Source of the DNA: Wallemia ichthyophaga EXF-994
Taxonomy: Eukaryota; Fungi; Basidiomycota
Length of the DNA stretch: 32,000 nucleotides
Direction: 5' to 3'
Assembly (NCBI RefSeq): GCF_000400465.1
Contig: NW_008806275.1
Coordinates: 1 to 32,000, forward strand
Part shown: positions 3,111 to 27,200 of the stretch, piece by piece
Layout of the letters: each line of letters opens with the position of its first letter
Numbering within the stretch: the stretch's first letter is position 1
Notes under the pieces: model-generated
Databases searched by the model: none
The model's input: only the letters and a program-made list of their open reading frames with translations
What the model was told of the DNA's origin: nothing
Translations under genes and position numbers: made by a program

Positions 3111-6007
3111 TCACTCCAAAACACGCGCATCTACGCGCAATTTGAGACACTTTCTGTAGAGATTACCATCTAAATAGAGACGATGGTCGTACTGCTGCGT
3201 TGAATTGGCTTGGAAGGACTGAATAGACTTGCGAGTAGAGTGTATGAGGCGAAGTTTTTGAATATTTATCAACTTGTCATCACCGTCACCTTTCTTTACG
3301 TAATTCGGACACTTGTCAGCTTGAAAGAGATCGCTCAAGAACATTCCTACGAATGGTATACAACCGCTGAAAATATCGTGTGACGGGATGCTGTTTGCCC
3401 CTGATGAAGAAGATCTGTCCCTCGTTATGCCAGTCAAACGTTTGTCGGAGGACGACGAATTTGACATCTTCTTATTGAGGAGTGTCATAGATATATCTCG
3501 CAGCATAGAATAGTTGTCGCTATTGCTGCAGAACACCTTGAGTGTCGTCAACATACGCATGCTTTGCTTGGATACATTCGGCCAAGTATCTGCCATCCGT
3601 TTGACGATAGGGTGATCCAAACCTACTACTATTTAGTGACATTCACTACAAACAAAATTTAAACACACCTCTCAATATAGCTATCAGCGTCATAAAGTTA
3701 TTCAGCTGCTGACACTTGAAAGCAAGTCGGATGAATTTACTGACAACAGCTGAGCGATCCTCTGGTGAGTCTGTGATGAGGATCTCTGAAGCCACCCATC
3801 TCACTGTCATGTTGAATCTTGCTATCACGATCTTGATAGATGAGCCGTGTAAGTTTTCATTACTGCTAACCTTCCTACGTGCTACTTCTTTCATGAATGA
3901 TACCCAATTAATAATTGTGTCAAATTTAAGATACTCCTCCTTCCAATTGTCCAGCTTCTCTATATCCTCGAACTTTATCTCGTTGAAAAGATCCTTCTCA
4001 ATAAGGGAAAATTGTTTAGAGAGCTCCTCCGTCTTGTAATCCAAAATCCACGATTTACACACAGATTTCTTTGTCGTGTTGTGGCTATCTATTATCGCGC
4101 TTGAGCCATGACTCAATCCTCTCTTTCTATTTATGGGTAGTGAAGGTGAAGTGACTGCAACGGAGTGCGAACGAGGTTTTGGTTGTATGGTATTGCTAGT
4201 AAAACTAGCACTTCCACCAAGCACGCTATTTGCGCGTATTATCGGTGATAAGTTGGGTGAAGAGTTTTCACTTGCGTCGGTGCTAACTACACCCTGACTC
4301 TGACTCATTCTTTTCTTCTTGGACTTTTGCATCATGGACTCGACTTTACGTAATTTTTGCTTTTGTTTCACTTTGTCGATGTGTCCTTCCAACGCGCGTA
4401 ACGCCGCATTCACATCTCCATCGTCTTCTTCATCAGATTCAAGCCCCTCAATGGTGAATGTCTTCTGCCAATTATCCATATCTACTTGAGAATCTGTCAT
4501 TGTTTCGGAATGAGTGGTAAGTCGAGCTGCACCATCAGTATGTGGTAACTTCTTCCCTTTTACCGCTGAATCATCCACATCTTCATCCACCTCCTCATCA
4601 CTATCAATATCGCTGTCTATATCATCTAATTGTAAAAATTTGGTCATAATTGAGTTATTTTTGATTTTGTCATTACTTTCATCATCCTTGTCTGTATTCT
4701 TGGGTATAATATTGTTTACATCAATCTCCTGGAGTTGACAGAACTCCTGAAACGATATCGTTACTGTGTACTCATCTCTGAATTGATCCTCATTGTTATC
4801 TTGATCACTATCGAATACCTGTGGCTTGTTGGACATTATACGCTTACCAATTTTGCCAATTTTGCCGACTTTGTTAAACGTTTTGACGAATGTGTCAGCA
4901 ATTGAATCGTTATGCTCTGATGCATTTACCGGTGATGACGTTGATGGTGCTGTGCTCGCTGTCATTCTAGACGATGTGGAAGAGGGAAGATAGGTTGGTG
5001 GACCTGGGTCAAAGTCCAGACTGAGGTGTTTGTCGGTGCTGGAATTTCTGCTGGAATTGCTACTATCAAACGACGACAAATTACCATCATGCGAATGTTT
5101 CTTGTAAATTTCATAAACACTTTGACGCTCCTTGGCTATATTGATGAGCTTATCGATCATCTTTACGGACTTGTCATTCTGTATCTTCCTCTGTTCATTA
5201 ATCCATCGTGACAACTTAAGACGGAGGTCTAAGTTGGGCACGAAATCAAAGCCAAAGTAGTTGGAGATCCATGATCGGAGCATGACAAATGTCCTCACCC
5301 TGACTAGTTCTAAAGCAGGCTCATCATCACCACCCTGCAGCGTCCACTCGAATCTCTTAAATAATAAGTTGGCCAACTCCATCGAGCTGAGGTATAGTCT
5401 ATAAGTGTTGAAAAATAATTCTAAATCGTCAAATAAGAACTCTGAGCTAAGTTGAGAAATCCATCTATATATTGATGCGCAGAGTATCGTTCCATCGTTG
5501 AAATAAATATCCTTGTCCTTGTAAGATTGGTATTGATTGAATAAATAATATAATGCGTCTGCATCTGTATCTGCGTCTGTACCTCCAAATGCAGTCTCCA
5601 CCGCGCCTCCACTTGGGCAGCCATCTGCAGCCAAAAATTCATTGTCGACGGGTGTTCTTGTATTACCGAATAAATCATTGCGCACTGGCTTAGCCAGTAA
5701 TTCTATCAAGTAATTTTTCAGATTGTCGAATGTATTTGGGAGTTGTAGCCTGAGATCCATAGTACTCGAGTTTTTAGGTCTGAACAGGTGATGAGTACAT
5801 TTGCATCACTGTAAAACACTCCTCATACCTAACTACATACTCATTCTCAGTTTTTATCTGTATGGTCAAGCCACTGGACTTGATGTGTCCATCGACAGAG
5901 CATCCAACACCGTACTTGAGATCGAGAAGCCTCTTCACCTTCCTTGCTGTCTCACCTTCACCCGTAATACAATAGTTCCCGTCTAAACTTATTTTAATTT
6001 CTTCCAT
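3111..6007 (-). CDS. Ras guanine nucleotide exchange factor (REM + CDC25 domain, Lte1-like architecture)
   Basis: REM-like ELFFNTYRLYLSSMELANLLFKRFEW...VRTFVMLRSWISNYF. A long low-complexity middle is followed by the CDC25 core ELSKQFSLIEKD...FNMTVRWVASEIL...SKFIRLAFKCQQLNNFMTLIAILRG and GCIPFVGMFLSDL. The 5' exon (5774-6007 ORF) joins in phase; otherwise the start is at 5760. Confidence 0.88.
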
Positions 6008-10237: not shown

Positions 10238-10290
10238 GTTGGTAGTTGAATCGACAAGGACGTCGCACACGTCATTGTGTTATGTGAAGA

Positions 10291-11248
10291 TTAAATGAAG
10301 AATGGCAAAAAGGAGTACACATTGTTTCTGTAATTTTTATATTCGTTTCCAAAGAACTTGATGAGATATTTCTCTTCATCTAAAGTCGGTTCAATTGAGT
10401 ATCGATGAAAAAGGTTCACTTACGTTTAATCCGGTCAGAAAAGAATCTTTGTAGGATGATTGCGAATCCCAAGAAAGATAAGGGATTCGTTAAAATCATT
10501 TGAGTGCCTAAAGCCCACAGGTAGAAACCCAAATAGGATGGATGACGAACAAAGCTGTTTTATTCAGTGTTTGACAAAAGGCAAAAGAGGTATTACATAC
10601 CTATATACGCCCGAAGTAACCAGTGCATGATCTTTTTGCTTGAAAGACGCAACGTGGTGTGAAAAGCTCTCATTCGCGTGTACCATAGCTAACGTGCGTA
10701 GCAGCTGTCCAACTACGACTAAGCAAAAACCTTAATGATATCATTATACGTTTTGTTAAGCCAAAATTTGAGCATACCTAATATTATCGGCCATTTATTG
10801 GAAGAGACTGAGGGAAAAAGCCACACTAAAGCGATGTGCGACACAAGGCCGAAAGAGTGAGCAACGAAGTAACTGTAGCCATTGTTTAATAAATAAGCTG
10901 TCGGTTGATTAGCCGAACGAACTGTTGTACGCATTATAACTAACAATCGACTGATGTTTTTGTTGTATTCCAGCCTGCTGTACTGAGGAATTCCCAGAGA
11001 TGAAACCAACAAAGTACAACAATATAGAGAGAAGTTTGCGCTGATCCTCTGAAATAACCAATAAATATACCAAGATGAACGTTTATAGCTGATATACCGG
11101 GAACCAAATTCGAACCGAAGAAAGCGCCTAAAGTAAAAGCGATAAGAGAAATATTGAAAGCAGTGTTTGGGAGACTGCCGTTAAGTCTTGGAGGGTAGTC
11201 AATCTGATTGGCGTATAACGCAGATCTGGGTATCTTAGTAGACGACAT
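10291..11248 (-). CDS. STE14: Isoprenylcysteine carboxyl methyltransferase (ICMT)
   Basis: FHLWEFLSTA...YLLNNG, FSHHVA...HALVTSGVY, RHPSYLGFYLWALGTQ, RIKHEEKYLIKFFGNEYKNY...LPFFI*. These are the diagnostic ICMT C-terminal motifs. Confidence 0.93.
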
Positions 11249-11379
11249 GAGGACAATGGAGTAAGTGTTGAAAAGACAGTTGAGAAAATAACATAAAATA
11301 CAACAAAAGCTTTCAGGCTTTTAAATTATCAACAGCGATGTCTTTCTGACCAAAACCATCATCTTTAGCAAGTCCACTG

Positions 11380-11948
11380 ATGACTACTATTCCCTCAAGA
11401 CTCTCTCAAGTTGCAAGATCATCAAACTCATTAGCTGAAGCTCATGCAAGAGCTAGAACGCTTTATCGTGACTTCTATCGCAGCGTGAGTACCTCAAACG
11501 ACGAGTAGGCCGATGAGGCTCAACGGATTGAATAGGCTCCAAGCATCTGTGCATTATACTCACTTAACATTCCACCTTCACAAATAAGAGCAAAGATTCG
11601 TCAGGAATTTGAGAAGAACAGAAATTTGGATGATTTGAATGTTATTGACTTAGTCTTATTCAAAGGCAGGCAAGAGTATCAGGAGACGATGAATGCATGG
11701 AAGCAAGAGTCTCATATAATGCGCTGGTTCGCTTTGGAAGAGGTATGTTTCCTTATCTTTCAATTTCATCTATTTAACTCCACCACAGGCTCCACGTTAG
11801 TTAACAAAACACTTGAGATAACGGTCTGACACTCTAAAACAGCTAGACCTCAAACATTCCTCGAAAAATTCTATGCAGGGTATGTCTCCTTCTACTCTCT
11901 TGATCTTCAGCTTAATTCCTGTTTAGTCGCGACGAAGACCAAGTTTAA
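11380..11948 (+). CDS. NDUFA6: NADH:ubiquinone oxidoreductase LYR-family subunit B14 (NDUFA6)
   Basis: MTTIPSRLSQVARSSNSLAEAHARARTLYRDFYRS/APSICALYSL...IRAKIRQEFEKNR...VIDLVLFKGRQEYQETMNAWKQESHIMRWF...FLEKFYAGRDEDQV*. Confidence 0.92.
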
Positions 11949-12015
11949 TTATAATACATCACTTTTCTACAAGAATACATTTTGAAAAACATTTTGATTA
12001 TCTATGATAAAGTGT

Positions 12016-13234
12016 CTAGGCTCTTAAGACTGGGAGCTCATAATCATTGACGTTGTTTTTGCTTTTAACTGTATTTTCCTTCTCGTAGTTATCTATCCTA
12101 GGACTAGGAGGAAACGAATAGTTCGAAAGGCTTGAAATACGATCGTTTCTCTGTGAGAACCTATAACAAATCAGTCTGAAGTCTGAGACCAACCTCAAAC
12201 TCACTGTCTAAACTTCGGCTTCAGGCAAGGCATGAAAATGCAACTCAATCTAATGTACTCTTTTCTAGCCTCCTCTGAAAGTCCAAAGAACAAGAAGAAG
12301 ATAATAGATGACAAGATTGGCACTATCCAGCTCGCTATATTTACGCTTAGTTGATGTTGAGTCATTTCAGATTTACTAAGTCGATAGATGACGGAAAAGT
12401 GAGCGTGAACTTGGTTCCAGCTATTATAAGGTAGTAAATGTCCGTTATTTGCTTGAATGTTGACGACTAGTTGAGCTATTGCGGCTGCGACAGTGAGAGT
12501 AAGCATCACCACGGCAAGTCCTATCAAACGGAAGTATCTACTCTTAGTGAGACCGTGCGTTTTCATTTTGAACAAGTCTGTGAATGTTTCTTTATGCTGG
12601 TAGAAACTTCGGATTGTCTTGACTATCGAAAATGGGCATTATGTAATCCTTCAAAATGTAAACTCACATGAGTAAAAAGCCGCTACCATTGCAAAAATAA
12701 ATGGAAGAAGGGACGTGTGAACGAGAGAAAGCCATGAAGGCCAAACCACAGGCATACAACCAATACCTTCGACGAGGTTGAATCGTCGATCTTGAACTAC
12801 CAAGTGTAGTACCATATAGATGATAGGGACAAGAACACCAAACGCTAGTTCGATCAAGAGCTTTTTTTGCCTGTCCTTCCTGCTTGTATTAACTACAGAT
12901 GCTGTTGCTATGTTTGACAGGTTGCGCAAAATACATGCTGCTGTGGTCGGTATGGCGATATTTGCTCCGATTATCAGCTTTGTTGCTGCTTCGATTAATA
13001 ATAGTCACTGTTATTCCGTCTGTACTCACTAATGTCACACCAAACTGGAGTACGAATGTCAACATTATCGTGCCAAACGATTGAGTTGATAAAATAAGTG
13101 AAGTTTACAATTGCAAGCCAAGCAATAAGAATAAGAACACTGGTATTGCGTACACGGTAGTGCCATGCGCAAGGCAATATGGTGATGATCACAGCGAGTA
13201 TTGAAATGATTGGTAGGGCCACCAAAGAAGACAT
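12016..13234 (-). CDS. STE3: STE3-type pheromone receptor (class D GPCR)
   Basis: LPCAWHYRVRNTSVLILIAWL...NSIVWHDNVDIRTPVWCDI/TTKLIIGANIAIP...CILRNLSNIA...VQDRRFNLVEGIGCMP...RYFRLIGLAV...WNQVHAHFSVI...FFLFFGLSEEARKEY. Seven hydrophobic segments after splicing. Confidence 0.96.
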
Positions 13235-13299
13235 GATAGTCGTTTAGATTATGCAACTAATATCGCTTAATCGCTTTATCATTCGTTCCCTTTCTCCGT

Positions 13300-13462
13300 T
13301 CATTGTCTCAATTAATTTACATCGCACAATGATTTTAATGCAGGAACGATCAAGTCATGCGTAAAAAGAAAAAGAAAATGGAAGCCTCATTGTCCTTCTG
13401 ATGACAGAGTTTTGATCAAACGAGAACAGTGAAAGATAAGCGCAATAAGGTTCAGACAATGA
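13300..13462. promoter_or_regulatory. Cluster of four (G/C)ACAATGA motifs, putative HMG-box/pheromone-response elements in the STE3-pheromone bidirectional promoter
   Basis: TCATTGT at 13300-13306 and 13387-13393; ACAATGA at 13326-13332 and 13456-13462. The core matches the ACAAT HMG-box consensus. Confidence 0.55.
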
Positions 13463-13527
13463 TATTTAGAGATTATAATTAAGAGAGCTTCCTCTTGAAT
13501 TTTCTACATCGTGTCACAAACGTAGCA

Positions 13528-13647
13528 ATGATACCAGAAATTGAAGTCTCACAAATCCAAGTTGACCAAGTCCACATCAACGTAGAGAGAGAAGAGCCGG
13601 GTGAAAATGAGACATATGGTAGCTCATCTGGTTGCATCATTACTTAA
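13528..13647 (+). CDS. Lipopeptide mating pheromone precursor (39 aa, CAAX = CIIT)
   Basis: MIPEIEVSQIQVDQVHINVEREEPGENETYGSSSGCIIT*. Terminal CAAX, ER dipeptide upstream of the predicted mature peptide, divergent from STE3 across 293 bp. Confidence 0.9.
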   Translation: MIPEIEVSQIQVDQVHINVEREEPGENETYGSSSGCIIT

Positions 13648-13668
13648 GGAAAAGTAAGTGTCTACTAA

Positions 13669-13695
13669 GAGTCTTTGTGAATCTGACAAAGACTC
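13669..13695. repeat. Perfect 10-bp inverted repeat (GAGTCTTTGT / 7-nt loop / ACAAAGACTC) in the pheromone 3' UTR
   Basis: Arms at 13669-13678 and 13686-13695 are exact reverse complements. Confidence 0.75.
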
Positions 13696-13740
13696 CACCA
13701 GGTCTATCCAATGCAGTCTGCTTTTACTTAGAACTTTGAC

Positions 13741-13942
13741 AATATGTAAAAAGGCAATCAATGATGATAAATATAACTATATGTCAATTATCACCTTTCC
13801 ACAGATCCTATCATTGAGCCTTTTAATATACAAATAAACTAACACCTTTTGTGTTGTCTGATGGGCGAATATTAAAAAGACAGTCAATGATAAATACAAC
13901 TTTACTTCTATCATCACCTTTCCCCAAATCCTACTGTTGAGC
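13741..13942. repeat. Imperfect direct repeat of about 75-79 bp (13741-13819 and 13868-13942); second copy contains the CAF1 stop codon
   Basis: Shared blocks aatat(g)taaaaag / tcaatga / taaata-aact / atcacctttcc / atccta / ttgagc, aligned by eye. Confidence 0.75.
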
Positions 13943-15062
13943 GATTTTGATGATAAGGTGCAATAGGTTGGGGGCCAACGTAAGGCGTAGGTATAGGGTT
14001 ACTCATAGGAGTGAATGGTGCTCCTGGAGTCTGTATAGCACTAGCGCCAGCTCCTATGCCGATGCCATACAAATATCCCATACAATGAAGTCTGTGTTGA
14101 GTTAGCCAAGCCTAGAACCAAGCGAAGTACCCCACAATTGTCTGTCCCTCTCAGATGCACCATCAAAAAACTTACTGCGCATAGAGAAGAATGAAGCAGA
14201 TGTGACCAATGAATCTGATCCTGCTTGATGCTGTGGGCCTATCCGCATTACCTGATGAAAGTCAGCCGATTCGGCATGACGAAACAGACGTGTCTAACCT
14301 GCAACTCATCTGCTATATCTTGTAGACCACCTTTAAGAAGCCTGTTGATCTTCATAACGTACTTGATGTCGAATATGCAGGGGAACCATATGCGAAGTAG
14401 ATCAAAAAAATCAGTTTCATTTGAAGGTAGTGGCAGCGCCGTAAGAACTTTGAGTAAGTAACCAAAGTCATATCCACTGCATCAATCAGTTGCGTACTAT
14501 GTACTTGCAGTCTATACATACCTATGAAACGATATCCAGTGAACATGATCAAACAGAACAAAACCAGATGTGACTAGCTTCTCACCAAATTCCTCTATAT
14601 CGACACCATTAGCTTCCAGCCTCTTGAAATTTATCCCAGATTTCGTGAGTAATTCTATTGAATCGGGTGCGTACATATCATCACTGCGAATGTCATGAGA
14701 ATGGGACAAAGATGATGGTGAGAATACTCACTTCAAATTGAATTTGAAATTGAATTGCCAAGTTGGATATTCGGGCATGTTCCCCTCTGCGTCAGCGATA
14801 GTGATACCCAATTGAATGATTTTAAGGAGATCTACGTTGCACCGTAACGTTTGGTAATGGTAATCTGAAGAATTCTTAAAGTTCCCAATCGGCCTTGCTA
14901 CAACACCAGGAAATTCCGTGTCCTAGGGCTGTTAGCCTGAGTGTCAAAGATGACAGCCAAACTAACCATGGACACGTATGGATATCGATCTACTAATTCA
15001 CGGAGAATATCTAATTCGGCATCAAGATTATCTGCCCAAACCTCGCGAATCTGGCTCTGCAT
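13914..15062 (-). CDS. CAF1: CCR4-NOT deadenylase subunit Caf1/Pop2 (DEDD nuclease)
   Basis: IREVWADNL...[17 protein letters not shown]...[17 protein letters not shown]...WQFNFKF...[12 protein letters not shown]...[15 protein letters not shown]; stop TGA at 13916-13914. Confidence 0.97.
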
Positions 15063-15116
15063 CTTTCTTGATAGTAGTAAATCAAGTCGACGGAATAGTC
15101 TAAAAATCTGAATTAA

Positions 15117-16096
15117 ATGGTTTTACAGGACAAATATAAAGCAAAGGCTTCTCGCGCATGGAAATCTTCTAGAGGCTTGAGTACAGCCACGAGACCTAAC
15201 AGAAGACCCCCACCGCCACCACCAACACTCACTGATGAAGTAGCATTCCCAGAGCTTCAGAAGCAGGATGTCCCCATTGATAGTGGAAGTGGAAGTGGAA
15301 GTGGGAGTGACACTGGAGACGATTCTCAGGATGAATCCAATTCCGCGGGTGGAGTTGCAGTTGCAGCTAGCATTACTAGCAACAGTAAGTTGACAATATC
15401 TGATCAACAGCTATCTCAATCAAGTAGCCGCTAGGCGATCACAGCACCCAAAGTTTTCTAGGCGGCGTTTGGTAAATAACTCTAGTAGATATGATGAGCC
15501 AGACGACGAAGGCGAGGAAGGTTTGAATATTCATTTAACTCACCTTTATTTACTAAGGATATACAAGGTCATTCATCAAATGAAGATTACGATATGTCCA
15601 CTTTCATGACGAAATCTGCAAATGTGGATGATGATGTTGGTCAATATAGTACACAGAAGGCCGTTAATATAGACGAGGGCGATATAGATTATGACTTAGC
15701 AAATAGGGATAGGAATAATAATCGGCAGGTACTTCAAATGGACACACAGAGTACCAAAGAATTAAGGGAAATGCATAAAGACAGAATCAACGCTGAAGCG
15801 GGTTGGAGTGAGTCTGCAGACCACTTTTGTGACATCGCTGATTATATTTAGACCTCAAATCTCGTCTTAGAGGCGAATCTGGTAGGCAATACATTCAGCG
15901 ATACGAATCTTCAAAGAAAACGTCGGATCAAAGCAACGACAACCACTTTTTCGACAGTATAAGCAACACTCCGGCTTTGATAGGAATCCAAACAAACAAT
16001 AAGGACGACAAAGTCATACCAGAAGCTAACGAATCGTCAACAGTCGTTCCACAAGGCATCGCAGAAGATCAAGATTTTCTGGATAATTTGATTTAA
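15117..16096 (+). CDS. Hypothetical, largely disordered protein with Aven-like motifs
   Basis: Four in-phase exons give [15 protein letters not shown]...[16 protein letters not shown]...DYDMSTFM...[10 protein letters not shown]. The Aven resemblance comes from recalled motifs only. Confidence 0.65.
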
Positions 16097-16267
16097 TAAT
16101 GCATGATAATAATTGAAATAGAAGATACGAGCTAAACAAGTGATTTAGTGAATCAATCGTCTCGATTGATAAATAGTTCAAGACGTCATTACGGTATTGA
16201 GATATATTCATTTGTAGATATAGTTTGCAATTATTGATCTATCATGCAAGAGCATCTTGGTATTGAC

Positions 16268-17190
16268 TTAGATCTTTGGTTCTCTTTCAGCGTCTCTTTC
16301 AGCCTTTGCAATGCGGAAAGCTTTCTGGTATGGCTGTAATGAAATTAGAATATATATCGGTTAGCTTCAATGGCTCTTACCTCTTTATCTTCCTCTGAGA
16401 GATCCTTCCACATTTGAGAAGCAGCTTTCATTGCATGTTTGGAGTCACCAAGGTCTAAGGTGAGCTGTGGGATGATCTCAGACATGTAACGATTGCGAGC
16501 ATTAGCGAGTCCTTTAGTTCTAGTAGCTTTATCGGCTTGCTTAGCTTCACGTTCAGATCTGTTCATCTCTTTGCGATACTCTGCAGGGATTGAAAGCTGC
16601 TTGGCTCCAGATTCTCTGCGAATGTTATTGATGTGGCTGATGTCTGAGAAAGTCTTGGTCATCCACCAGTTCCTCTCTTCAGGCTTGTAAAGCTTGTAGG
16701 CATCATGGTAAGCGGACTCATATGGCTTTGGTTTGTAAGACAGATGAAAAAGTGACAAACAAAGACAAACCTCCTTTTGAGTCTCAAAAAGGCTTTCCCA
16801 TGCAGGTGAAGCAACTTTTTGACCGAATTCAATCGGATTGATTTTTGCGTATGGCTTGAACTTCTTCTCTTCCTCAATGAGATAGTGCATGTAGCGCAGG
16901 TAAGGTGACTTTGGCTTCACTGGAGGATCGATTTCCGGTATGCCTGACTCGTTTATTTAGCAGAAATAGTGTTCTAAACAAAGTTCACCCACGGATACGT
17001 TCTCTAAATTGGATAGGGGTATGGCCGAAATCACGCGTAAGCAGCGAAGGCAAAGCGCCAGCGACGCCTTTGACTGGTGAAAGACCTGCTTCGATCAGTT
17101 ATATTCAGTGCAAAATACTTCAAGCTCCTCACCTTTGTTTGGGACGGAAGCACGTGTAAGGTTGAGTGATGCAAAGCCTTTAGCAAACAT
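16268..17190 (-). CDS. Tandem HMG-box protein with predicted mitochondrial presequence (mitochondrial nucleoid HMG-like)
   Basis: Box 1: PPVKPKSPYLRYM...FGQKVASPAWESLFETQKE/PYESAYHDAYKLY. Box 2: ANARNRYMSE...AMKAASQMWKDLSEEDKE/PYQKAF. N-terminus: MFAKGFASLNLTRASVPNKGLSPVKGVAGALPSLLTRDFGHT. Confidence 0.82.
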
Positions 17191-17341: not shown

Positions 17342-17385
17342 AATTAAGAAAATTAAGAAAACAATGAAAACAATGAGAACAATGA
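17342..17385. repeat. 9-bp-period tandem repeat (aattaagaa x2, then ACAATGA-containing unit x3) between the SIT4 stop and the HMG start
   Basis: ACAATGA at 17361, 17370 and 17379. Confidence 0.75.
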
Positions 17386-17456
17386 AAAGTATAAGAACAA
17401 AGCGGACGAAGCGATAAGAACGATGAATTAATAAATGATGCACAATTTACAAAGAA

Positions 17457-18898
17457 TTACAAGCTGGTGATTTGGCGGTAACTTTAGTGGCAAGTAGTGA
17501 GAGACTAAGAATAGACTCACAAGTACTGAGAGGGTGTGACCCGTGTTGCTGAACCCCTATCCTGATCTGCCACTGTGAAGATACTCAACAGATGATAAAG
17601 GAACAAGTAAAAACAAACCAGCATCGAAAATCGCGAAGTTGTTCTCTGTGACAGGCTCATTCTCTTTTACTTTGAGAACACTTGCAACGTTCCCTTTGTC
17701 GAAGTAAGCAAATTGACAGAAATTGTGGAATGTTGACGAACCGCATCTATAACAGTAGTTTGGCGCCGACCACACGGTCACTAAATCGTTGTCAGGAAAC
17801 ATAAATTTGCTTCTCTTGAGTGAGTCGCAGTCCAAATGAAATGTGGCAACCTACTATCCCTCTTGGATAAGTTGATGAGCGCGCGCAATCATATCCAGTC
17901 CGTTTATGTGATTAAACTGGAGTTCAAGTTAAAACAAATATCAGCGTAGAAATGTGATATACCTCTTTCGTAACCTTATTACCAAACAGCCAACCAGCCC
18001 CTCTGGGACTAATACTCCAATGCTCAACATCATCAGGATCTGACCACATGAGATCTAAATGGTATTAACAGAGAATATGTGTCAAATCGAGCTATTCACC
18101 ACAGAAAGGCCCATCATGGGGTATTTCTTGCGCTCTTGCTGATTTATTCTGAGCGGTAGAATGATTAAAATAGTATGAAGCTTACCGATCACTCTGATTT
18201 GATCTAATGTCCGCACGTCTGGCGACAAACCACCATGAACACAGAGTATCCTACCATCAATGATCTGAAACCTTTAGCTGTGTTTCAAATTGGTTTGCGA
18301 CTCACAGCAGCTAAATTGAGATAGTCAAATACTTGACAACATGCTTTCCAGACGCTGGCGTTTCCATATTTCTGTTGACACTCGTCTTATACTTTCGATG
18401 AGTGACGAAAGACCGAATGAGCAAGGCAGCTTACCATAGAATCCATATACTTGTGTGATTTGCCTAGATTCATGATTACCGCGCAAAAGGGTTATTCTAT
18501 CTGGGTACCTAATTGACTGTTAAATATGATTTCAAGTATAGAGTGACTAACCTCGCTTTCAACGCCATCAAGAGGGTGAAACTTTCCAGGCTTTGATGAC
18601 CTCTGTCAACGAAGTCGCCCTGTTTATGCTCAGCACTGAGAAATGCAACAACTGAGCGCCTTACCATGAAGATATAGTTGGTATCCCTGCAATCACCGCC
18701 GACCCGCAAAAGCTCAAGTAAATCCCAAAATTGACCATGTATATCTCCACAGACAGTGACAGGACTGGAGACTGGTTGTATGTTTGACTCCTCTATTAGC
18801 AAACCCAGTACTACGTCGCACAAGATCTTGATTTGAGATTCAGCGAGATAGTTTCCAGATAGTATTGTATCGAGCCATTGTTGGGGATCTACTGTCAT
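17457..18898 (-). CDS. SIT4: PP2A-like Ser/Thr phosphatase, Sit4/PP6 subfamily
   Basis: [74 protein letters not shown]-terminal QYFL* is completed by a 7-nt last exon (17463-17457). Confidence 0.92.
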
Positions 18899-18984
18899 TA
18901 TCCGTGCTAGTATCTACGCGGTATATTCTACAAAAGTAATTTGTGTTCGTCGTTTGCTCACAACTCAGTTGCCGAGTTACTGTC

Positions 18985-19934
18985 ATGTCCGCAAAGCAGC
19001 ATCCATTTCTCAGAGGGCTTTCTGAGCTTCTGCCTTACCCATCTGCCCTGCAATCCGTCCCTCACAATCAGCCGGAGACTTGGTTTGACTTAAAGCAGCC
19101 TTCGCTGTGGATCATCATTGGCTCTATAATCTTCAACCCATTGTTTTGGAATATCGTACGTTTGAAAGCCCATTTATTCTATTTTCCTTATTCTTCTGCT
19201 TAGGTGGCTCGTCAAGGTTCGTGTCGTCTTGATTGTGGTCTGTGCTTACACGCAGGAAGAATATCACAACAAGCTACTCACCAAGCTAGCTGGTGGCCGC
19301 CCATATCTTGGCTGCTACTTGCTTGCTTTTACTATCTTCTCTCTGGGTATTCTGCGCGATCACCTGTGTGTATGTTCTCAGCCTCGCGCTTTTCTGACAA
19401 TTTCAGCTTCCAACAAGCATTGGCCGCTCAGCCAAATCTTGTTCCACATCCAGACTACCCAACTGCCCATATTGTCCTCGCTTTTGTGCTCTTCTTCACC
19501 GGTCAATTGCTGGTCATTACTTCAATGTTCGCATTAGGTGTTACTGGAACTTATTTAGGTGACTACTTTGGTATTCTCATGAGTCATCGCGTCACTACCT
19601 TTCCTTTCAACGTCGTGGAAGATCCAATGTACATTGGAAGCACACTCTGTTTCTTGGGCACTTCTCTGTGGTTCAGGTCACCAGCTGGTTTGGCAATCAG
19701 TTTGTTTGTCTTCATAGTCTATCAAGTCGCTCTCAGCTTTGAAGGGTGAGTGATTATGCCGCCGATATTATTGCTGACTTGAGTAGCCCATTCACTGCCA
19801 TGATTTATACGGCAAAGGATAAGAAGTCAGAGAAAGCACCAACAATTGCAGCGGCAGAGCCTTCAGAACCATCTCAAAATAGCTCACCTGCTTACAGAAC
19901 CAGAAGTCGTGCCAGAAAGGTTATTGACGAGTAA
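18985..19934 (+). CDS. OPI3: Phospholipid N-methyltransferase (Opi3/PEMT)
   Basis: IIFNPLFWNIV/AR.EYHNKLLTKL...ALGVTGTYLGDYFGILM...VTTFPFNVVEDPMYIGSTLCFLG...VYQVALSFEG/PFTAMIY. Confidence 0.95.
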
Positions 19935-20015
19935 TTTTCTCTCGTGTTTTGGTTTTCTCAACAAAATCGAAAGGGATTAGATGTATAAGTAAATATAATA
20001 GCAGCTGATAATAAT

Positions 20016-21292
<1,277 letters not shown>

Positions 21293-21432
21293 ATTTTAGA
21301 TGAATGGCAAAATTCAAGAAATGGATCTTCTGTTCTATCAGCACACGCAATAGTCAAATCTCGATAAATCGCCTGAAACGGCGTCTACAAAGGATATTTG
21401 AGTATAATCAATATGTGTGTATTCCTCTATTC

Positions 21433-24060
21433 ATGGTCTGCCCCGCTGACGCATACAAAGGAACACGATAAGAAGAAACGTTTTCACAGCTAAGAAGGGT
21501 GCGCAAGTATCGCATATATGCAGTAAACAATGCTTACAGGTGCACAGGAGAGAACTATGAACTGCGCGCAGGTATGCTCCTACAAAAGCCTCCTGAAATC
21601 AGCTAATCAGGCTTAGATTTGAATAGCGAGTACCGCGACAAGAGGAAGGATGCCATCAAGAGAGTTATTGCCAATATGGTCAGTACCTTGTTGACTTGCG
21701 CTCCCTCCTTATGCTCTCTTAGACGGTTGGCAAGGACGTTTCTGGTCTGTTCCCGGATGTACTCAAGAATATGCAGACAGAGGACTTGGAGCAGAAAAAG
21801 TTGGTCTACCTTTATCTAATGAACTACGCGAAAACTCAACCAGAACTCGTTATTCTCGCTGTGAATACCTTCGTTAAGGTTAGTGAATCACTACGTAATG
21901 AACCTCTTTAACAGCAATAAGGACGCTTCAGATCCAAACCCGCTAGTTCGTGCACTCTCAATTAGAACTATGGGTTGCCTTCGAGCTGAGAAGATCATCG
22001 ACTACCTATCTGATCCACTTTCTGCTGGCCTCCAAGATGACAATCCCTACGTACGCAAGACAGCTGCTTTGTGTGTTGCAAAAATGTACGATCTGAAACC
22101 TTCCTTGGCAATTGACAGAGGTTTCGTTGATACACTCCAGGAGCTTGTCGGCGATCCGAACCCAACTGTACGATTAGTTTTCACAAGTCTTCCATATGCT
22201 GACTTTGTGAAAGGTTGTTGCAAATGCTGTTACAGCTTTGACTGACATTCACAGTTCTCCTCATCCCGAATCGCCTGGCTTTGTCATTGACAGAGACGTG
22301 CTAAACAAAATACTGGTTGCCCTCAATGAGTGTACAGAATGGGGAAGAATTTCAATTCTAAGCGCTTTGTGTCGCTATACACCTGCTGAGGAGAAAGAAA
22401 CAGAATATATTTGCGAGCGCGTTCTGCCACAATTTCAGCATGCTAACGGGAGCGTCGTATTAAGTGCTGTCAAAGTTGTGATGATAAATCTGCATCGTTT
22501 ACAAAGAGAAGACTTTATCAGACAGCTTGTTCGAAAGATGGCGCCTCCTTTGGGTGAGTCAATCAATGCAAAATTTCACTGCTAACACATAGTAGTCACG
22601 CTCGTAGCTTCTGAACCTGAAGTTCAATGGGTTGCTCTTCGTAATATCAATCTTATCTTGCAGGCGCGTCCTGATGTTTTATCATCAGAACTGCGCGTCT
22701 TTTTCTGCAAATACTCAGACGCTCAGTATAACAAAGTTGAAAAGCTTGACATTTTGGTAAAGTTGGCAAATGAGAATAACGTGGAAACATTGTTGAACGA
22801 GCTGAGAGAGTACGCTAGCGAGGTTGACGTTGATTTTGTCCGCAAATCAATCCGAGCAATCGGAAGATGCGCAATCAAGATTGAAGATGCTGCCGAGCGT
22901 TGTGTTCAGGTGCTTGTTGACCTTATTAACACAAAAGTTTCTTATGTCGTACAAGAGGCAGTTATAGTAATAAAGGTGGGTACCATTGAGATTGATCAAA
23001 GCAATGCCAACGCTTCTTAGGATATATTCCGCAAATACCCGAATTCATATGAAGATATTATTCCAACGTTGTGCGAAAACTTTGAGGAGCTTGATGAACC
23101 TGAGTCAAAGGCATCTCTTATTTGGATACTTGGAGAGAATGCAGAAAAGATTGATAATGTCGAAGAATTATTGCAGAGCTACTTAGATAGTTTCATCGAG
23201 GATGCATATCCTGTGAGTATAGTTGCGGCATTCAACACAAATCTCATTCGATTTCAGGTTCAACTCCAGACTTTGAGTGCAATAGTTAAGCTTTTCCTCA
23301 AGAAACCGGAAGGCCCTGCTCAAACATTAGTTCAAAAGGTGCTAACAACTGCGACAAGTGATTGTGACAACTCGGACGTGCGTGATCGCGCTTTTATCTA
23401 CTGGAGACTGCTTTCCACAGATACTGGAGCTGCAAGGGTGAGTCGCTGGTACTGCATTTGCAAAATCTGAATGTTTTAGTCGATCACTGTCGCCGACAGA
23501 CCACCTATCGTGATTCCAAATCTTACAGTCTCACGGGCAATACTGGAAGAGCTAATACAAGAAATCTCTTCAATTGCCGCTGCATACCACAAACCCTCTT
23601 CGACATTTATTGGAAAGGGTCGTCTTGGAGTTGACGCCCTCAAAAAGGTCAACTTACATGAGGGGAACGAGAACGAGAGTCTGTCAAAGCAGAGAGCACT
23701 CAACACAGTGGCTCAGGGTATGTTTTCACTATGTGCAATTGCTCATCTAAACCACAAATCGCAGGTGTTAAAGCAGAAAACCTTCTTGATCTCGATGAAG
23801 ATGCATCGCCGTCAATGTCACCTAGCACCCAAGAAGGTTTTAACAGCTTCACAGCCAACTCTACAGCTCAAAAGCACGCACATGTGCCAAGTCCTTCGCA
23901 ATCCAACCCTGTCGACGATCTTCTAGGTCTGTTCGGAAATGCAACTGTTTCGAACCCCGACCCGTCCATGAATGTAGAAAACGACATTTTTAGTACAAAC
24001 ACGACTCCGACAACCCAAGAAAATAAGAAAAATGGAGGCCTAGAAGACCTACTTTTTTAA
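21433..24060 (+). CDS. Clathrin adaptor beta subunit (AP-1/AP-2 beta-adaptin); start codon uncertain
   Basis: KKGENYELR...[96 protein letters not shown]; short tail ending GGLEDLLF*. Confidence 0.94.
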
Positions 24061-24234
24061 AGTAATTTTGCTATAAATGAATCGCATTAAGCTTATCTCT
24101 TGTATCACAACGTCGACGAGATTATCAGTAGCATCAGATAAGGGCAAAATAACGTCTACAATTTACTCAATTATTTACGAATCATCTGAAGTCGTCGCAT
24201 CTCTTTGTTTTAACTTCGTATATTTATTCTCACG

Positions 24235-27200
24235 ATGATTGCCGTGGATGTTGTAGTTCACAACGTACTGAATGAGTTGTCGATGGACGGCAACTGGGGT
24301 ACGTCACTTTCCCTATCTGCGCCTTTTCCCAGGTGCCGGTGTTCGAATCTCTGACTTGCTACATAGGCTCTGACATTCGTACACTAAAAAAGTATATCAA
24401 AGCCCAATTAAATCCCTCACTAGATATTGAAAAAGGACCTTTGCTTGAGTTTTTTTGGAAGATGCTTGCTCAACAATCGTCGTTTCAGGTTGGCTTGGCT
24501 ACGCAGCAACTAAAGCTGGCTTTGAGGGGAAAAGCACCACCTCGTCCTTCAAAAGGTGCAGAGCAAACAGCATTATTTGAAGTACTCAACCAGCAATGTT
24601 CAGAATCCTCCCTTGGTATTCTCCTTGAAACCTACGGAGATAATCTTCGTGTTCGAACTGATGATGATATGAATTGGTTTGCAATTACTGGTCTAAACCA
24701 CAGACCACCAAAGCTGAGCCCTATGGTCGTCACCGTTCTCACTTTCATATCTAGAAGTAAAGAAAATGGTATCACTTTTATCGAAATGACCAAAATGACG
24801 GGATTTGATAGTAAGTCCATTTTCTATTGTGTCAAGATACTTCTAGAGATGGACCTTGTGTGAGTATTTATTTTCTCGAGTAATCGCTTCTGATTACTGT
24901 GGTAGCGTTAAAATGCACACAATCTACCAAGGAGCTACTACAAATGTCGCTATTCACCGCAAGTTTTTGGCAAATTCACGACACTACCAAGCTCAAGCTC
25001 AAACTGAATCCACTTCACAAACAAAAGATGACTCTGACCGAGAAATGGATGTCTGTGATGAAGAGGGAGAGCAAATTCGGGGCTCAGATGGATTACCTCA
25101 ATTTTCTCCGTTAAATGAGGCTCACTTAAACAATGCTCCTTTGCTCAGAAGTCGCATTTTGAAGCTGATCAGAAACTGTCCCAATCGAATCATCCACCAC
25201 AAATTCATCTTCGTCAAAATTGGGTTTCCAGCGGGTAATAAATTCATTCGAAGAGTTGTCGGTCGTCATTTGGGCAGGATGATTGATGAAGGATACCTCG
25301 AGCGCTGCTCTATCAAGGCCTCTACTCGATCAATGCGCCTTAATTGCTTGCGAATCCCTGATGAAGATGAGACTTTTAGTCATCCTCAAAATATCATGAA
25401 TGAAGATCTGAGTGGAATGAGTCCTGGAGACGATGAAGAAGACGATGACGACGACGACAGCACTGACACCTTTGGAATCACACTTGCTATTACAATCGAG
25501 AAGCAAGTTATGAACATCGTTCACGAATCAGGTATATCTGGAATAACTATGACTGTAAGCTTTCTTCTTCGCTTTATTTTATTCTGAGTATAAACTGACA
25601 ACTGAAAGGCAATCAAAAACACTCTCCCAATGATAAATAGGAGAACGCTTGAATCAATTTTGCTGCGTCATGAGACAGACCACGATCCTGGTAATTTGAG
25701 TGACCTTGCTTTGAAGTCAATCACTGAGTCTTGTGGGCGTGAGCGCAGACAGGTATATTTTTCACGGAGCAACTTCGTCCAGCGTGCAGAAAGAGAGGGC
25801 TTGGATGTTGGAGATGACCTTGTTTCAGAGGACGCTGGCTTGCTGAGTAGTTTGGCAACTGACAGTGGATGTGCATCGCGTCAAGATTACCAAGCGCTCA
25901 TTGCTAAATTGATCGGAGCAACTGGAAAGAAGAAAAATAATAGACAAGGTCTCATTTTTGGTGCAACGCCTGATCAAAGTCCTGCTCCTAAAAAGCTTGG
26001 CAGACCCCGCAAGACAGATCCACCTGCTGATACAGGGACGGTGAAAAAGCGCGGTAGACCTCGCAAAACAGAAATTACTGCAAGCTTCGCAAATGCAACT
26101 CCTAGGAGCATTTCCGGGCAGCCAGAAGAGACAGAAACTCCTTCAAAGGCATCGAAGAAACGTACTCATAAGGATGAAGTTGCTGAATCATTACCTCAAA
26201 AGAAAAAAGGAAGACCTTCTAAAAAGATGATAGCTGAAGCGGAAGCAGCATCAGCGATGAATAAAGAGCAGTCATCAGCGAAGGAAGCTTCCACACAGAA
26301 GTCAGCACCAGACCAATTCAATGAAAGTGCTCAGAATGGAACCAATAGCACTGAAATCGAAATCAATTCTGATACTGACCAAGTTTCTAGTACGAACATC
26401 AAGCCAGATGCAAGATCTTTAGAGGAAACCCACAAGAAAACAAGCCCACCTGATGAGAAAGGATCTTCAGATGAGAACAATAAAAGGATTAGTGACACGC
26501 CTTCAAAGCGAAAGCTTAGATCGAGAGGAAGTATAAAAATACCTTCTTCCGCTCCTATCATCATAGATGAAGATTCTGAAAGGGAATCGTCGAAGCGTAA
26601 AAAGATAGGAAGTCCGGAGCTAGACAGTGACGAGTCAGCCGCCTATCAACCTGAACATAATGAAGACGAAAATGATCAGAAAGATGAAAGTTATGAAACA
26701 GAAAAACATCAACTTGGGGCGCATGAGGATGTTGATAATGTTGGTGGTGTAGAAGGAACAAATGAGATTAACATTACTCGCAATGTCGCTGAGAGTGGCC
26801 AACCAAACATCTCCGTGAACGACGCGGAACAAATCAACGAACTCGACACCAAAGAAAACCCCCATGAATTCGACACAGGCAATGCGGAACCAGAACTAGG
26901 ACCTACCACGCCTGCAGCTGTGGCGTCAGCACCTAGAGTCAGGAAGACCAAACATGCTATTAAGAAGATGCGATCTGAACGCACAGACCTCTCACATCAC
27001 CGCAGGCTTCAAGATTTGTTTGGTGCAATTAAAGGCAATGGAGGTATAGTTGAAGCATCACGTGAATCCTACGACGTATATCAGAAATACGTGCATGGTC
27101 CAAAATATCAGACGGCACCACTAATTGACAAAGCTGCTATGAATAAGACGCTCAATGTCTTATTCCAGGAAGGAAAACTCAAACAGACAATTGTTTCAAG

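Follow-up and report, generated by a model that had tools for sequence, protein, structure and literature searches.

A probable lipopeptide pheromone precursor gene divergent from STE3 in the mating-type locus of Wallemia ichthyophaga

Described precursors and the Wallemia peptide

Cryptococcus MFa and MFalpha, Ustilago mfa1/2, the Tremella tremerogens, Agaricomycete Phb, and Saccharomyces cerevisiae a-factor are the described systems closest to the 39-residue open reading frame (ORF) considered here, with which they have in common a precursor of 35 to 60 amino acids, a CAAX box, linkage to STE3 at MAT, and allele specificity. Agaricomycete precursors carry a charged doublet (ER/DR) 10 to 15 residues upstream of the CAAX box (PMC5473757), and pheromone transcripts of Agaricus bisporus carry 3'-UTR introns (PMC8305134); the Wallemia ORF is similar in having an ER doublet and a candidate 3'-UTR intron. 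In contrast, sequence homology of the Wallemia ORF with the other basidiomycete precursors and with a-factor is undetectable, there being no Pfam match. It also departs from other basidiomycete precursors in its predicted mature peptide, which in W. ichthyophaga contains four acidic and no basic residues, and in its single copy per allele in the window, by which we mean the whole 32-kb stretch of DNA that was analyzed.

Two earlier descriptions come from within the genus. According to PMC3849046, a pheromone gene in the MAT locus of W. mellicola (formerly W. sebi CBS 633.66) was mentioned by Padamsee et al. 2012, and its position, between STE3 and the HMG gene, is orthologous to that of the W. 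ichthyophaga ORF. For W. ichthyophaga itself, Gostinčar et al. 2019 (Front Microbiol 10:2019, PMC6738226) printed the exact 39-aa peptide and placed it "between STE3 and CAF1", with the label 'possible pheromone precursor' in File S1. As both sequence and position are identical, the ORF is a rediscovery, and the original prediction erred in presenting the gene as hidden. Conservation of the coding sequence across species, motifs in the promoter, and an intron in the 3' UTR are not mentioned in the portions of the 2019 paper and its File S1 that were examined. Within the literature examined, four items seem to be unreported: the W. hederae orthologue together with a test for coding selection, the motif array, the 3'-UTR intron candidate, and the figures for trans-specific STE3 similarity. 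What is added here is a stronger case that the gene is real and selected, along with candidate regulatory and processing features.

This fungus was long considered asexual, and the gene marks one of its two mating types; no sexual cycle has been described for W. ichthyophaga (PMC3849046, PMC6738226), as had been supposed of its lineage from the DNA alone. Peptide and receptor together provide a concrete handle with which to provoke and detect mating in Wallemia, a point already made in the 2019 paper (PMC6738226).

The locus, the receptor, and the precursor ORF

The window is the mating-type (MAT) locus of W. ichthyophaga. The opening line of the File S1 alignment of PMC6738226 occurs exactly once in it, at position 3667, and the adjoining CAF1 is 99% identical to W. 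ichthyophaga proteins. The gene order also agrees with that of the published MAT locus, running RasGEF, UBP6, BAP31, RPN9/PCI, ICMT, LYR, STE3, pheromone, CAF1, a gene of unknown identity, HMG, PP2A-like, PEMT, DIM1, AP-beta, and TFIIIC. A scan of all six frames of the window for the homeodomain motif WFxNxR found no instance, and SXI1, for which PMC3849046 gives a distance of about 20 kb to STE3 in W. mellicola, probably lies beyond the right end. The locus had been taken from the outset for a complete P/R mating-type cassette; the P/R module is indeed present, but the MAT homeodomain gene, SXI1, falls outside the window.

Three minus-strand ORF pieces within 12201-13234 match Pfam PF02076 (STE3) with E values of 2e-19 to 2e-26. 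Spanning profile positions 2-66, 83-170, and 189-292 of 292, they score 70 to 94 bits each against a curated cutoff of 29.2, which places the protein in the PF02076 family. The multi-exon receptor gene occupies 11972-13234 on the minus strand, its 3' limit being approximate, with exon pieces at 13031-13234, about 12669-12985, and 12204-12575, plus a C-terminal tail. Its ATG lies at 13234, a start that W. hederae and W. mellicola retain as MSSL/MSL; the spacer to the pheromone ORF is therefore exactly 293 bp (13235-13527), and the two genes are divergent. Coordinates, translation, and the PF02076 match all agree with the original prediction of a 39-aa CAAX ORF at 13528-13647, head-to-head with STE3 over 293 bp, and the ORF is physically linked to STE3 within the MAT locus. 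The accompanying remark that gene finders miss such ORFs is borne out as well: the pheromone ORF is unannotated in the deposited assemblies, and STE3 itself is uncalled in those of W. ichthyophaga and W. hederae, as it is in W. mellicola strains with the alternative allele.

A search of a large protein collection with the STE3 protein returned one match only, a conspecific Logan fragment (P0001). Its product runs beyond the in-frame stop of the window STE3 ORF, apparently through a gene-caller artefact in which TGA was read as Trp. Three unrelated-looking Logan sequencing runs (SRR25394065, SRR25393946, and SRR25394054) contain short genomic contigs with 99.7 to 99.8% identity to the window. 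The ORF is called as a 39-aa gene on contigs L001 and L002 (the same contigs as L004 and L005), while L003 ends inside it; apart from the window, the only contigs that bear the ORF are genomic.

Isoprenylcysteine carboxyl methyltransferase (ICMT) is the enzyme class that methylates prenylated pheromones. An ICMT/STE14-like gene lies on the minus strand at about 10567-11250 (Pfam PF04140, E = 6e-10), two genes from STE3 and 2.3 kb from the precursor ORF. It is thus linked to the cassette, and the inversion includes it in W. ichthyophaga as well as in W. mellicola. Its W. mellicola orthologue bears the PF04140 annotation, and a comparable linkage of ICMT to the B locus is found in Boletales (PMC5473757).

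The precursor ORF (13528-13647, plus strand) has 39 codons, reads from ATG to a TAA at 13645-13647, carries an A at -3 of the ATG, and translates as MIPEIEVSQIQVDQVHINVEREEPGENETYGSSSGCIIT. Its length and its ending, Cys-aliphatic-aliphatic-X-stop, are those of a 35- to 60-aa pheromone precursor; the CAAX box, CIIT (13633-13644), is the signal for prenylation, AAX cleavage, and methylation. The ER dipeptide that had been noted ahead of the mature part forms residues 20-21, 14 residues before Cys36 and within the 10- to 15-residue range. A predicted N-terminal pro-region (residues 1-21, MIPEIEVSQIQVDQVHINVER, 13528-13590) would end with this doublet and be followed by a predicted mature peptide of residues 22-36, EEPGENETYGSSSGC (13591-13635), whose N-terminal boundary depends on the presumed cleavage site. 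Given an ER spacing that fits the Agaricomycete rule and an (E/K)R-E motif kept by the three Wallemia species, the 15-mer is a reasonable prediction, though we hold it tentatively: the cleavage site is an extrapolation from Agaricomycetes, and the doublet in W. mellicola is KR, not ER.

Within the 32-kb window there are 13 ATG-started ORFs of 20 to 120 aa that end in C-x-x-x-stop, so that a CAAX ending and an ORF are not significant by themselves. That such ORFs arise by chance lends some weight to the reading that this one is a non-coding accident of an intergenic promoter or UTR region, to which we return below. What raises it above chance is a frame conserved across species and an allele-specific presence. 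A Pfam search with four Wallemia peptides, at E values up to 10, gave no matches, fungal pheromone families included. Absence of a Pfam match, like the unusual acidity of the mature part, would suit a small prenylated peptide or protein that has nothing to do with STE3 signaling and lies beside STE3 by chance. However, the fungal pheromone Pfam families are lineage-restricted, so the missing match is compatible with the functional class, and the size and architecture of the ORF fit pheromone precursors only.

Coding conservation and allele specificity

Syntenic regions from W. hederae (L006), W. mellicola CBS 633.66 (L007), and more strains were retrieved via members of the CAF1 cluster and compared. 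Between the 3' end of CAF1 and the 5' end of STE3, with relative strand unchanged, W. hederae has the orthologue MIPEIEISQIEVDQLHINVEREDPNESDPYGGQSGCVIA and W. mellicola the orthologue MISDLEVPTLQFDPVHIDVKREPPNETEKDPIGNIPNCVIT, with CAAX boxes CVIA and CVIT, respectively. The motif (E/K)R-E is kept in all three species, its doublet being ER in W. ichthyophaga and W. hederae and KR in W. mellicola. The 41-aa W. mellicola ORF has the leader, the (K/E)RE motif, and the CAAX box in common with W. ichthyophaga, whereas its amino acid identity is about 45% and its predicted mature part, EPPNETEKDPIGNIPNC, differs. Predicted mature regions are acidic in each of the three species, with four acidic residues apiece. 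The sole length difference is a 6-nt indel in W. mellicola, which is in frame.

Between W. ichthyophaga and W. hederae, 29 of 120 nucleotides differ. Of these differences, 15 are synonymous, with a pS of 0.63 that is close to saturation, and 14 are nonsynonymous, with a pN of 0.15, for a dN/dS of about 0.12 over the ORF. The 29 differences fall unevenly on the codon, with 9, 3, and 17 at positions 1, 2, and 3 (chi-square P = 0.006). The pro-region (residues 1-21), with 3 nonsynonymous and 7 synonymous changes (dN/dS about 0.06), is the most conserved part at the protein level, having a dN of 0.06 compared with 0.32 in the faster-evolving predicted mature part. When an equal number of changes was placed at random in the same species pair, the ATG, the open frame, the stop, Cys at -4, and a limit of at most 12 amino acid changes were all kept in 2.7e-4 of trials.

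Codon-like substitutions together with a retained frame and CAAX box disfavor a chance ORF. Against that reading stand the codon-position bias, the synonymous excess, and the in-frame indel, as well as the retention of ATG, CAAX, and stop in three species with synonymous sites near saturation (P about 3e-4 from one species pair alone), and we give it the least credence of any considered here. Frameshift or loss of the CAAX box in sister genomes, on which the original prediction had staked itself, was found in neither W. hederae nor W. mellicola; in both, a coding sequence is maintained.

A different reading accepts a genuine pheromone-type gene but supposes that it no longer serves mating, either as a relic of recent date in a halophile that is effectively clonal or as a gene reused for autocrine or quorum-type signaling within the species. 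A sexual cycle that is unobserved and a meiosis gene set that is incomplete (PMC3849046) are in keeping with it, but purifying selection since the W. hederae split, as measured by the dN/dS of the ORF, is not. Strain-level variation bears on this reading too. In File S1 (PMC6738226), the ORF is present in 17 of 17 strains with this locus orientation and invariant in 15 of them; in strains 18 and 19 the last codon changes from ACT to ATT (T39I), turning CIIT into CIII with the CAAX box retained. This substitution at the CAAX X position (13642-13644) is the sole coding polymorphism of the ORF among those 17 strains. The X residue of a CAAX box influences the choice of prenyl group added. That the only coding polymorphism strikes this very position could point to a gene released from mating.

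The four inverted-allele strains have no alignable sequence at the position of the ORF in File S1 (PMC6738226). The same source describes in them a different CAAX ORF (…DTMYCIIV; box CIIV) in a 1150-bp insert beside BAP31. When the alternative allele L008 was compared with the window by blastn, identity was 99.5% over 17436-25523, 91% over 13916-16882, and 95% over 10269-11971, with zero similarity over 11972-13915, exactly STE3 and the pheromone gene. This stretch is the allele-specific MAT core, and its counterpart is L008 11145-12566. In alternative alleles, whether from W. ichthyophaga (L008, L009) or from W. mellicola (L012, L013), the CAF1-STE3 interval was found to contain no pheromone-like ORF. 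The ORF is thus mating-type specific, being absent from the alternative alleles of these two species.

The receptors give a measure of how old the two alleles are. Orthologues of the window STE3 are 79% (W. hederae) and 69% (W. mellicola) identical to it, compared with 37% for the alternative allele. More generally, the two STE3 classes are 35 to 37% identical inside a species versus 63 to 79% for the same class across species (window, L006, L007, L008, L012). Since same-class receptors are closer across species than the two classes are within one, the receptor dimorphism predates the species. Such an old dimorphism is what a working P/R locus would be expected to display, and on these comparisons the ORF occurs with only one of the two ancient STE3 classes. 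The reading of a gene that has left mating behind is further opposed by this dimorphism and by the persistence of both MAT alleles in W. ichthyophaga and W. mellicola. Linkage disequilibrium, moreover, decays fast (1270 bp), which the authors take as recombination (PMC6738226). We regard that reading as unlikely, while counting it the most serious alternative to a pheromone gene in use.

The two allelic pheromone candidates of W. ichthyophaga show no significant protein similarity (shuffle P = 0.89). Their start-codon contexts look alike (TAGCAATGATACCAGAAA versus TAGCAATGGAACCAGAAA), from which we claim no homology. A search with a BAP31 fragment toward the W. mellicola alternative-allele pheromone gave zero matches.

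Shared promoter, candidate intron, and proposed pathway

The divergent STE3-pheromone promoter (13235-13527) contains four HMG-box-type motifs and a TATA-like element. CATTGT occurs at 13301 and 13388 and ACAATG, an HMG-box (Sox/MATA-type) core site, at 13326 and 13456, giving four sites in 155 bp where 0.26 are expected from the window density (cluster P about 0.008 by random placements). Spacers of W. ichthyophaga, W. hederae, and W. mellicola hold 4, 5, and 5 ACAATG/CATTGT sites, respectively, versus about 0.3 expected, in arrays at window 13301-13461, L006 11489-11641, and L007 11512-11635. Whereas the spacer overall is only about 65% conserved, most of these sites fall in aligned blocks that do not vary. 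An HMG gene, at 16348-16956, lies inside the locus, 3 kb from the array, and the motifs are candidate pheromone-response elements for an HMG-box factor. The TATA-like element (13474-13483) is conserved and sits 45 to 55 nt upstream of the ATG, with no intervening ATG.

Elsewhere in the window, between the PP2A-like and HMG genes, three tandem copies of AAACAATGA with a 9-bp period occupy 17361-17384 and are followed by ACAAAG at 17397. This threefold ACAATG repeat, upstream of the HMG gene, was set aside, as W. hederae and W. mellicola have no ACAATG cluster there.

Downstream of the ORF, a candidate 3'-UTR intron of 48 nt (GTAAGT…CTGAC…CAG) is predicted at 13654-13701 on the plus strand. Candidate introns of 46 to 50 nt are present in all three species (46 nt in W. 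hederae and 50 nt in W. mellicola), beginning 4 to 22 nt past the stop.

A motif-rich promoter common to the ORF and STE3 also speaks against a prenylated product unrelated to the receptor, as does the fact that the ORF tracks one STE3 class in three species and that both are missing when W. ichthyophaga or W. mellicola carries the alternative allele. A chance neighbor of STE3 is accordingly a very improbable account, if marginally less so than a chance ORF. Judged by its sequence, the ORF fits the CAAX lipopeptide pheromone precursor class in every respect that sequence can assess, the Pfam match excepted, and it is very probably the pheromone-precursor gene of one of the two W. ichthyophaga MAT alleles.

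Taking the S. cerevisiae a-factor pathway and basidiomycete pheromones as models (pathway summaries in PMC5473757 and PMC2148179), we infer the transcription, processing sites, lipidation, export, receptor specificity, and motif-binding factor of such a gene as follows. A 39-aa precursor would be made from its own TATA-driven transcript, divergent from STE3. Cys36 would be farnesylated, the final three residues (IIT) removed, and the new C-terminal Cys methyl-esterified; the linked ICMT gene, 2.3 kb off, belongs to the same non-recombining block. The leader, which is conserved, would be cut off, probably after the conserved (E/K)R, to leave an acidic lipopeptide of about 15 residues, which would be exported and would activate the divergent STE3 class of the other MAT allele. 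Shared promoter motifs (4 to 5 ACAATG/CATTGT) could provide co-regulation and feedback of receptor and pheromone. The TATA-like element, the candidate 3'-UTR intron, and the linked ICMT gene lend indirect support to the making and processing of such a peptide.

Some further suggestions are more speculative, and we think them doubtful as a set. The motif array may be the Wallemia pheromone-response element, read by the MAT HMG protein, whose gene is part of the same inversion; the inversion of >15 kb, with ICMT, might then be a self-sufficient unit in which pheromone is produced, modified, sensed, and answered; and the strongly acidic mature peptides might adapt extracellular signaling to low water activity. 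Were all this true, a working sexual cycle in an obligate halophile would become directly testable.

Two further observations concern the layout of the locus. CAF1 and HMG are separated by a gene at 15117-16093 (plus strand) whose product, about 270 to 280 aa long, matches no Pfam family; all Wallemia assemblies annotate this gene, which sits in the part where the alleles share 91% identity. On its left side the inversion ends at about window 10269, between RPN9 and ICMT. The same junction, with ICMT beside a poly(A)-polymerase-like gene, is found in the alternative allele of W. mellicola.
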